From Hemiscyllium ocellatum (taxonomy: Eukaryota), in the NCBI RefSeq assembly GCF_020745735.1, contig NC_083426.1:14632001-14696000 (forward strand): 64,000 nt of DNA, written 5' to 3'. Position numbers and translations under genes: made by a program. Of the stretch, positions 43,146-46,100 are shown in pieces. Under the pieces are notes generated by a model. That model had not been told where the DNA came from, did not search any database, and saw nothing but the letters and a program-made list of their open reading frames with translations. The number at the start of each line of letters is the position of its first letter. The stretch's first letter is position 1.

Positions 43146-46100
43146 ATGAAGTGGCTACTTGTCGCCCTCGCTTGTATCCAGCTCTCGGAATGTGTGATCA
43201 GGTCAGAAATCGTCAAATGATGAGAGAGAATGTATAACCAGACAGCGAGGACGAATAAGACATGACAAAATTTCTAACTTTTGTTCTTTTCTTGTCAGAA
43301 TGCCTTTGTTTAAGGGCAAATCTGCCCGTGATGTTCTCCAGGAGAAAGGGCTGCTGGAAGAATTCCTGATGAAACATCCATATGATCTCTGCTCAAAATA
43401 TCAAGTGCCCTACTGCAGCCAATCTCTGGATACAACGGAACCAATGATTAACTACCTAGATGTAAGTCACCCATCGACAAAAAAAAATTCATCATAAACT
43501 ATATTTGTTGAAGCTTCTGCATATATTTTCATCTTCCATGAGGCTTTTGTTAATCAGTGATAACAATTCAGTAGATAAACTGTGCTTTTGGAAGACATGA
43601 TGTTGTTCTTTAACCTGTTATAATTAACAACACAAAACCCAAAGGATGGAATTTAGATATCAAGTGTGGCTGTTGTCATATGCTGAAAATCTCTCGGAGA
43701 AATATGGATTAGTTGGGGAAAGCTAAGTAAATTATTTATTTTTTTCAAATAACAGATTGTCATAATGTGTAGACGAGCTAAAACCATTTGACCAAGTGCC
43801 ATAGACCAAGCTTTCCAATAAAGTTAAAGCCTGTTGAATGAAATTAGCACAATGGATATAAAGTTGACTGAGTGACAAGTAGTGAAGTGTTGTGATGAGC
43901 AGTTATCTTTTTCAGTTTGGAGGAAGGTATAAGATTGGTTTCCCCTGGGATCAATATTTAAAGATTTGGTCTATTTCAATGGTCTGTACTTGGATGTGCA
44001 GGGCACAGTGTCAAACTTTGCAGGGGAAACAAAATTCAGAAGTAATGTGAACTGTGTGAAACGTAGAAGTCAAAATGAAGAGGACAGAGATAGTTCACTG
44101 GATTGGGCAAACACTTATTCGATAAAATTTACCATCGTTGTGTGAAGTTATACATTGCAGTAGAAAGGTCAGAGAGACAATATGAAATAAAGAGGGTACA
44201 GGAGTTAAGAGATCTTATTGTACACATGTACAAATTGTTTGAAGGTGGCAGAACTAATTAATTAATAAGGTACACGGGCTTTATAAATAATTGCACAGAA
44301 CATAGGTGCAAGGAAGTTATTGTATAAAACACTGATTCAGCCTGAACTAGAGCATTATGTCCATTCCAAACACAACAATTAAGGAATGACGCATTAGAGA
44401 AGGTCCAGAAAAGATTTACGAGAATGGGTTCAGAGGTGACGAGGAATCTCAGTCACAGGGATAGTTCACACGGGTGGAAGCTGGGGCAGTTCTGTGTGAC
44501 GAGGAGTGAGTCAAAAAGAAGTTTGTTGGAAGATTCTGAATCATGAAGGATCAGGAGAGTGTGGACAGAACGGAAGTTCCCCATTGGAGGAACGGTGATT
44601 AGGAAAGGAAGAAATGGAGTTTGAGGAAAAACAATTGAGCACAGCTATTGACGAGGATCTCCAATGCACTGCCTAATAGGGTGGACAGGGCTACTTCAAT
44701 TGCAACTTTCAAAATGAAACTGGAGAATTAACTGAATAAAAATGCTTCCAGGATTGTGGGGGAAGATAATGGAGGAGGACTACATGAGTTACTGTTGTAG
44801 TGAGTCAGCAAGACATGCTGCAATGAATGACCATCTGCTTTGCTTGTAACTATTCTCTGATTGTATGGAGCTTGATGCAGAATACCAAATCCAGTATAAC
44901 GTCAAAGCTTCTGTTGCAGTGTAAGAAGTTACTGGTGACACCTTTTCTCACCAATGGCTGATATTACAGTTTGCACTTAATTAGCTGCGGGAGAGCTGCT
45001 GGCTGGTCTAGTATAACAGTTTGGCATTATTTTTAACAGCAGTTGGATTTGAGATATGATTTGAGATCAAAAGGGTGAAAATTGAAATGTAACATCATCT
45101 TAGCAATGGGATATATTACTCAGCAAAACAACAGAACAGAAAGATCGCTTATTCTTCCAAACTAACTTGACTGCGTCTATGTCATTTATTTCATAAAGTG
45201 GTTATAGGGGGATTTACCTTTGTTAAAGGGTATAGAATATAACAAGATGAATAACACGCGTTGCTCACTATATTCCCAGTTGATAAGTTGTGCTCTTCTC
45301 GTTCTTGCTGACAGTTGTCATACTATGGAGCAATCAGCATTGGGAATCCACCACAGAGTTTCACCGTCATCTTTGACACAGGCTCATCCAACCTCTGGGT
45401 CCCTTCAGTTTACTGCTCTGAACAGTCATGCAGTGAGTAAATGTTACTGCCGATTTAAACATGTTTCTCCACATGATCACTTTTCTTGTTGAATTCAGCT
45501 GTAGAACAAGATTGAAAGAGAATGATATTTCTTGAATATTTGTAGCTTAGCTATGAGCTTTGTAAACCATCAAAAGGCTTGGAGAGAAATTTATTAGAAT
45601 GCTAATTTCTTGATGGTTTTAGCAAAGGCTTTCTCTGGGAATGGACAAACATTTGAGTGAACCTACTCTAAAAACCTAACATGAATTTAAAATAATTACC
45701 AGTTTGTACTCCAAGGTAAGAGGTCTTGCTGCTTTCGTATATCTTCACTTCATGTGGGACGGAAACTCCAAGGTTGATTCAACATGAGAAATTGTTGGCC
45801 ATGGAAAGTATGTCTATCACACAGAGAAACAGGTTGACTGCCAACCTGGAAATATGATACACCTGATAGTAAGTGGTAAGAGCTGAAGACCTTCCCACTC
45901 AGCCATCCTGCAGAAGGCAATTAGCAGGAAAAATCCAATAAATGTTTATGGTACAATGTTCAGAAATGAGGCAAGGATAGAAGACAAAGAGATAGATGGG
46001 CAGGAACATTGCAGCAAAAGTTAGTGCTGTGTTTGAAATGACAAATCAGATTGAAAGGCTGAAAGAATGTAGAAAGACTCCCCAATGTTATAAATAAACG

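Follow-up and report, generated by a model that had tools for sequence, protein, structure and literature searches.

The conversion of pepsinogen to pepsin is a textbook case of pH-triggered zymogen activation. In the window analysed here, the whole stretch of 64,000 nucleotides from Hemiscyllium ocellatum, pepsinogen genes encode two unusual cysteines on either side of the Lys-Tyr pair of the propeptide. A sequence-only reading of this DNA had proposed that the two form a disulfide stapling the zymogen around this plug. Do these cysteines bond with each other, bond between chains, or remain as thiols?

Pepsinogen genes of the window

A six-frame scan, together with tblastn and blastn searches with the assembled protein, delineated three intact pepsinogen copies (A, B and C), each with nine exons, a 1167-nt open reading frame and a product of 388 amino acids; their introns are GT/AG throughout (Table 1). 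A fourth copy contributes exon 9 alone, its other exons lying beyond the window's end. The protein of copy C is identical, at every residue, to the RefSeq pepsin A-like protein XP_060701064.1 of Hemiscyllium ocellatum (P0146 in our set), and that of copy B to XP_060701063.1 (P0142), also pepsin A-like. Copy A is intact as well; it differs from B and C by 10 amino acids, keeps both extra cysteines and has no match among the Hemiscyllium proteins that the 90% cluster of P0030 lists. Further Hemiscyllium paralogues (P0144, P0318 and P0157) lie outside the window or represent the cut fourth copy.

Table 1 Coordinates of features in the window (exons in transcript order)
Feature	Position	Strand	Exons or content
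Pepsinogen copy A	1775-9369	-	9314-9369, 9052-9214, 6890-7007, 5545-5663, 4634-4833, 3379-3498, 2970-3114, 2074-2172, 1775-1921
Pepsinogen copy B	23131-31398	-	31343-31398, 31082-31244, 29114-29231, 27032-27150, 26133-26332, 24531-24650, 24255-24399, 23436-23534, 23131-23277
Pepsinogen copy C, 388 aa	43146-52683	+	43146-43201, 43299-43461, 45315-45432, 48672-48790, 49491-49690, 51163-51282, 51413-51557, 52280-52378, 52537-52683
Copy C, intron 1	43202-43298	+	
Copy C, exon 2	43299-43461	+	bulk of the propeptide and first mature-chain residues; Cys50, Lys52-Tyr53 and Cys58 inside
Copy C, cysteine-pair segment	43381-43425	+	residues Y47-S61
Copy C, Cys50 codon	43390-43392	+	TGC
Copy C, Cys58 codon	43414-43416	+	TGC
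Open frame in copy C intron 3	47231-48115	+	about 295 aa; GIY-YIG-like stretch
Fourth copy, exon 9 alone	63712-63858	-	99.3% identity to copy C exon 9 (blastn); tblastn match

Pairwise identity among the three copies is 97–99%, so they do not count as independent evidence for the cysteine pair. Copy A differs from B or C by 14–18 synonymous and 10 non-synonymous codons, and B from C by 6 and 2, respectively; the differing codons are mainly synonymous, and the copies are intact and under constraint. As a separate observation, the open frame within intron 3 of copy C fits the endonuclease end of a Penelope-like retroelement.

Exon 2 was found in no sequencing run on record as RNA. One contig from run X1, which stems from a related organism and whose status as RNA is a guess, joins exons 1, 2 and 3 at the modelled splice sites, skipping 97 and 1853 bases (the second GT..AG) and keeping both cysteine codons. 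It carries the differences L49P, Y53F and S59T, which point to another orectolobiform-like species. Its intron 1 joint falls one base to the right of the model (43202/43300, ends TC..GA), an equivalent placement because the joint base is shared. In contigs of three runs exon 2 occurs with its introns spanned, hence as DNA, and the cysteine codons are unchanged.

It is highly improbable that the pair is an artefact, whether of pseudogenes, of a misread frame or of a faulty assembly. Such an origin is opposed by the three intact frames with canonical splice sites, by the exact RefSeq matches of copies B and C, by the mostly synonymous codon differences between copies, by the spliced contig of the related organism and by the DNA contigs of the three runs. 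The motif with two cysteines, which the sequence-only reading had seen in three complete copies, is in this respect borne out by its codons, its intact frames and, for B and C, by RefSeq.

Identity and fold of the protein

The assignment of these genes to the pepsinogens, made earlier from the letters alone, agrees with domain content, catalytic motifs and tree placement. PF07966 (A1_Propeptide) matches residues 19–45 with 33.9 bits (cut-off 20.5) and PF00026 (Asp) residues 75–387 with 416 bits. Both catalytic motifs are present (FD94TGS and VD278TGT), and the flap tyrosine, Y137, is invariant. The AlphaFold2 model, for which 112 homologues were used, reaches a mean pLDDT of 89.1 and finds its best matches in 2PSG and 3PSG, with a TM score of 0.95 and an rmsd of 1.7–1.8 Å over 376 columns. 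The model places a short helix at residues 49–52, followed by coil, with a pLDDT of just 58–74 for residues 51–70. The protein is a standard A1-family pepsinogen zymogen, and its predicted structure shows a zymogen-like fold with the propeptide in the cleft.

Queried against a representative library, exon 2 alone returned 23 mainly fragmentary matches, the shark's own protein not among them; full-length relatives were reached by a database search seeded with an alignment of the window's own exons. Aligned with MAFFT in the absence of a long backbone, exon fragments ended up in misplaced rows, and this alignment was dropped. The best full-length match is P0030, a pepsin A-like protein of Chiloscyllium plagiosum with 98% identity, whose 90% cluster includes Hemiscyllium ocellatum proteins. 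In the tree, a branch with a support of 100 splits all pepsinogens from 14 cathepsin E sequences, and the window protein falls in an elasmobranch-only clade (99–100), next to the PGA of bony vertebrates and to another PGA clade of sharks. Its identity to PGA is 57–62%; pepsinogen C was barely sampled, and the assignment to A rather than C leans on source names and on this identity.

One protein named "cathepsin E-like", from Amblyraja radiata (P0172, 359 aa), was rejected as a true cathepsin E: its propeptide is of the cathepsin E type, but beyond the propeptide it shares 87% identity with P0164, a skate pepsinogen. It is probably a chimeric gene model, of a kind to be expected if ctse and pga adjoin in a cluster, and it was excluded from the trees.

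The cysteine pair of the propeptide

All three copies contain the motif HPYD(L/P)-C50-SKYQVPY-C58-SQSLD. The exon 2 equivalents on the minus strand, in copies A and B, begin it with HPYDLC or HPYDPC, differing only at L/P49 and at a few upstream residues. In alignment to porcine pepsinogen (2PSG), Cys50 is Cys34p and Cys58 is Cys42p, and K52-Y53 are Lys36p-Tyr37p; the two cysteines do bracket the Lys-Tyr pair, as had been noted. They are also, as claimed, additional to the six canonical ones, all of which are present in copies A, B and C (107/112, 269/273 and 312/349). Two others, Cys10 and Cys16, belong to the signal peptide (MKW...LSEC), as judged from homologous pepsinogens. With the signal peptide cut after Cys16, the secreted zymogen would have eight cysteines, the six canonical ones plus Cys34p and Cys42p, in keeping with the even count that the sequence-only reading had assumed.

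Ordinary pepsinogens had been said to have no cysteine here, and this is borne out. We looked at segment 17–73 in the 291 retrieved homologues of 340–430 aa, and found cysteines only in the elasmobranch clade, in cathepsin E and in a few singletons. Sporadic single cysteines of mammalian propeptides lie, for example, at 35p in pepsin A of Erinaceus europaeus and relatives (P0091, P0097 and P0102) and at about 31p in two fragments (P0005 and P0015), so that lone propeptide cysteines do exist outside sharks. By these comparisons, the extra pair sets an otherwise familiar zymogen apart, through a conserved Cys34p and a Cys42p at the position of a cathepsin E cysteine.

Distribution among elasmobranch relatives

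Within the clade, Cys34p is nearly universal, in the context HPYDPC-x-K-F/Y. Cys42p is limited to carpet sharks, the bullhead shark and the houndshark; sawfish and stingrays have a cysteine at 41p. All paralogues seen from Hemiscyllium, Chiloscyllium plagiosum, C. punctatum, Stegostoma and Rhincodon have the arrangement C-x7-C (Cys50 and Cys58), which also occurs in Mustelus asterias, one ENA protein and three Heterodontus paralogues. Its retention in the two Chiloscyllium species, Stegostoma, Rhincodon, Mustelus and Heterodontus lends the pair independent support. Pristis, Hemitrygon, Hypanus and Mobula combine Cys50 with Cys57 (C-x6-C, no indel) and Cys177. Cys50 is accompanied by Cys177 in Pristiophorus (seven paralogues) and Narcine, and by Cys342 in Carcharodon and half of the 12 Cetorhinus paralogues. 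It stands alone in the remaining Cetorhinus paralogues, in Amblyraja (five, one of them with a further cysteine at 338), in Leucoraja and in Scyliorhinus torazame (three), and Scyliorhinus canicula has no extra cysteine at all.

Two of these additional cysteines belong to the mature enzyme: the one at residue 342 in lamniforms (P0052, P0101) precedes the canonical Cys349 by seven residues, and the one at residue 177 in the sawshark and batoids (P0098, P0153, P0154, P0155) corresponds to pepsin Ala115, after the 110s helix.

Of the co-conservation expected for a bonded pair, one direction stands. The second cysteine never occurs without the first: Cys50 is present in 19 of 19 C58 pepsinogens and in all C57 pepsinogens, and no pepsinogen retrieved has the second alone. 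The converse fails, as Cys34p is found by itself in skates, in Scyliorhinus torazame and in many lamniform paralogues. On this distribution, Cys34p is independent of Cys42p, and the clade as a whole is not characterised by a staple.

Between the cysteines, four of the seven ring residues vary; across orders, invariance is limited to C, K, P and C. The position of Cys58 is removed by a deletion, of three residues in lamniforms and catsharks and of five in the sawshark. On a tree built without columns 44–66, parsimony gives a minimum of three changes for Cys58, five for Cys57/58 and four for Cys50. The second cysteine would either be part of an old pair followed by four losses, or have been gained at least three times independently on a Cys50 background.

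A putative disulfide ring around the Lys-Tyr plug

We consider an intramolecular C-x7-C disulfide between Cys34p and Cys42p the best explanation of the pair and its most likely state in this shark, with a probability of about 0.5. Cys50 and Cys58 would be oxidised in the ER, and the bond would close a ring of nine residues, C-S-K-Y-Q-V-P-Y-C. The tip of the ring, Lys36p and Tyr37p, would rest on the catalytic Asp94 and Asp278, so that the ring would rigidify and hold the plug. Should the last activation cleavage match that of other pepsinogens (around Leu62-Asp63), the ring would leave with the propeptide and the mature pepsin would be ordinary. The analysis establishes the sequence, the gene models, the family, the conservation pattern and the match of Cys42p to the cathepsin E cysteine, along with the zymogen-like fold of the model; that there is a bond, that it lies within one chain and that it would affect activation pH or stability are inferences.

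The extra cysteines are separated by eight residue positions on a single segment, the cysteine count is even and the three canonical pairs are intact, which supports a disulfide of the extra pair. That the second cysteine is never seen without Cys50 fits a local bond, and the persistence of the pair in several shark orders while more than half of the ring residues vary argues for it as well. In sawfish and stingrays the second cysteine comes one residue earlier with no indel, which suits a partner of Cys50 better than a fixed docking site. The tree changes are compatible with repeated gain beside Cys50 or with an old pair. Moreover, the family already uses short local loops (C-x4-C at 107–112 and C-x3-C at 269–273), and the model on 2PSG, with its helix and following coil, locates the segment where the zymogen plug is expected.

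Other observations weigh against the ring. Cys50 lacks a nearby partner in skates (six proteins), in Scyliorhinus torazame (three) and in half of the 12 Cetorhinus paralogues, suggesting either that an unpaired Cys34p is tolerated or that it has a role of its own. Stingrays and sawfish have three extra cysteines (50, 57 and 177), an odd number, and the position of Cys58 is that of the cathepsin E cysteine, which in that enzyme bonds between chains. The model, too, has limited confidence here, as its pLDDT for residues 51–70 shows. The staple interpretation of the sequence-only reading is therefore partly supported: plausible, unproven and weakened by the mixed co-conservation. Its further ideas, a stabilisation of the zymogen against urea and a tethering of the propeptide, found no support; tethering would require cleavage between 34p and 42p.

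Relation to cathepsin E and alternative states of the cysteines

In a phmmer search of the PDB, Cys58 aligns without gaps to Cys7 of the human cathepsin E chain 1TZS_A, a segment of 16 residues of the shark protein being set against CSMDQSAKEPLINYLD. Fourteen cathepsin E proteins were gathered by a separate database search, seven from elasmobranchs and the rest from coelacanth, reptiles, marsupials and placentals; in each of the 14, the single extra cysteine shares this column and precedes the Asn of N-Y-L/M-D by 12 residues. It is the cysteine through which cathepsin E forms its disulfide-linked homodimer (UniProt P14091; mutagenesis work from the 1990s). The ctse, pga and pgc genes of elasmobranchs make up one compact tandem cluster, and pepsinogens probably derive from a ctse-like gene (PMC13389413). 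Cys42p may be a character inherited from cathepsin E, convergence being the alternative.

The main alternative to the ring is that the shark zymogen is a covalent dimer like procathepsin E, stored or secreted as a homodimer, with Cys58 (with or without Cys50) bonding between chains as a retained ancestral feature. The gap-free alignment and the column shared with all cathepsin E proteins speak for it, together with the homodimeric nature of cathepsin E itself, which is linked through its N-terminal cysteine, and with the tandem cluster and ctse-like origin of pepsinogens; the lone conserved Cys34p of skates and others likewise requires a free thiol or an intermolecular partner. Yet a bond between two cysteines eight residues apart in a flexible stretch would normally form more quickly than one across chains, cathepsin E has one such cysteine and not two, and the clade stands well apart from cathepsin E on the tree, so that we regard the dimer as unlikely. 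Were the chain cut at the homologous pepsinogen site, both cysteines would leave with the propeptide and the dimer would exist in the zymogen only. A homodimer prediction for two chains of residues 17–388, run without controls, returned a score of 0.00 and speaks neither for nor against a dimer.

Alternatively, the cysteines may form no defined disulfide, one or both thiols being free, glutathionylated or heterogeneous, and the second cysteine a near-neutral change of particular lineages in a linker under little constraint. Most lineages of the clade (lamniforms, Scyliorhinus, sawshark, Narcine and skates) indeed either lost Cys58 or never acquired it, the linker around it is variable and prone to indels, a lone Cys34p is common, and propeptide cysteines turn up sporadically in mammalian pepsinogens, such as at 35p in the hedgehog. 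However, sharks and rays alike retain Cys34p, and several shark orders retain Cys42p, with changing neighbours; the second cysteine is strictly confined to the Cys50 background; and exposed free thiols are generally selected against in secreted proteins. This state, too, we judge improbable. A broader scenario, which we hold to be distinctly unlikely, gives Cys34p a zymogen function of its own, for example in a covalent dimer or in thiol-dependent control of storage or activation. The clade would preserve a state midway from dimeric cathepsin E to the monomeric pepsinogens, with Cys42p as a retained cathepsin E cysteine, and gain or loss of the second cysteine would move a lineage from interchain to intrachain bonds or back.

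We found no pepsinogen with a covalently constrained Lys36p-Tyr37p plug described in the literature. An intramolecular ring, if real, would be a natural experiment on the rigidity that the plug can bear, and in sharks it could alter the pH or kinetics of activation or the stability of the zymogen. The location of Cys42p at the cathepsin E position, along with the ctse-pga-pgc cluster, provides a concrete character by which to trace secreted monomeric pepsinogens from a cathepsin-E-like ancestor. If the cysteines are free or neutral, they are merely a lineage-specific quirk of sequence.

Comparison with known aspartic proteases

With porcine and human pepsinogen A (2PSG/3PSG), the shark protein has in common the nine-exon gene, a signal peptide ending in SEC, the A1 propeptide and Asp domains, both DTG motifs, the flap tyrosine, the three canonical disulfides and Lys36p-Tyr37p, at 54% identity. 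Positions 34p and 42p are alanines in the pig and cysteines in the shark, and unlike bony-vertebrate PGA the shark gene belongs to a separate, elasmobranch-only branch. Its sister elasmobranch pepsinogens (lamniform, skate, sawshark and stingray) share the Cys34p context; in them, Cys42p is absent through a deletion of 2–5 residues or a substitution.

Cathepsin E (1TZS; CTSE) shares with the shark protein the cysteine at the position of Cys58, followed by Ser/Thr. It has one extra cysteine, bonded between chains, whereas the shark pepsinogen has two. Cathepsin E also lacks Lys36p-Tyr37p and has I-Q-F/W there (propeptide type EFW..LDM-IQF), in contrast to the pepsinogen-type propeptide of the shark, with K-Y. 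Its gene adjoins the pepsinogen genes in the elasmobranch cluster (PMC13389413), and its clade is separate from that of the shark protein with a support of 100.
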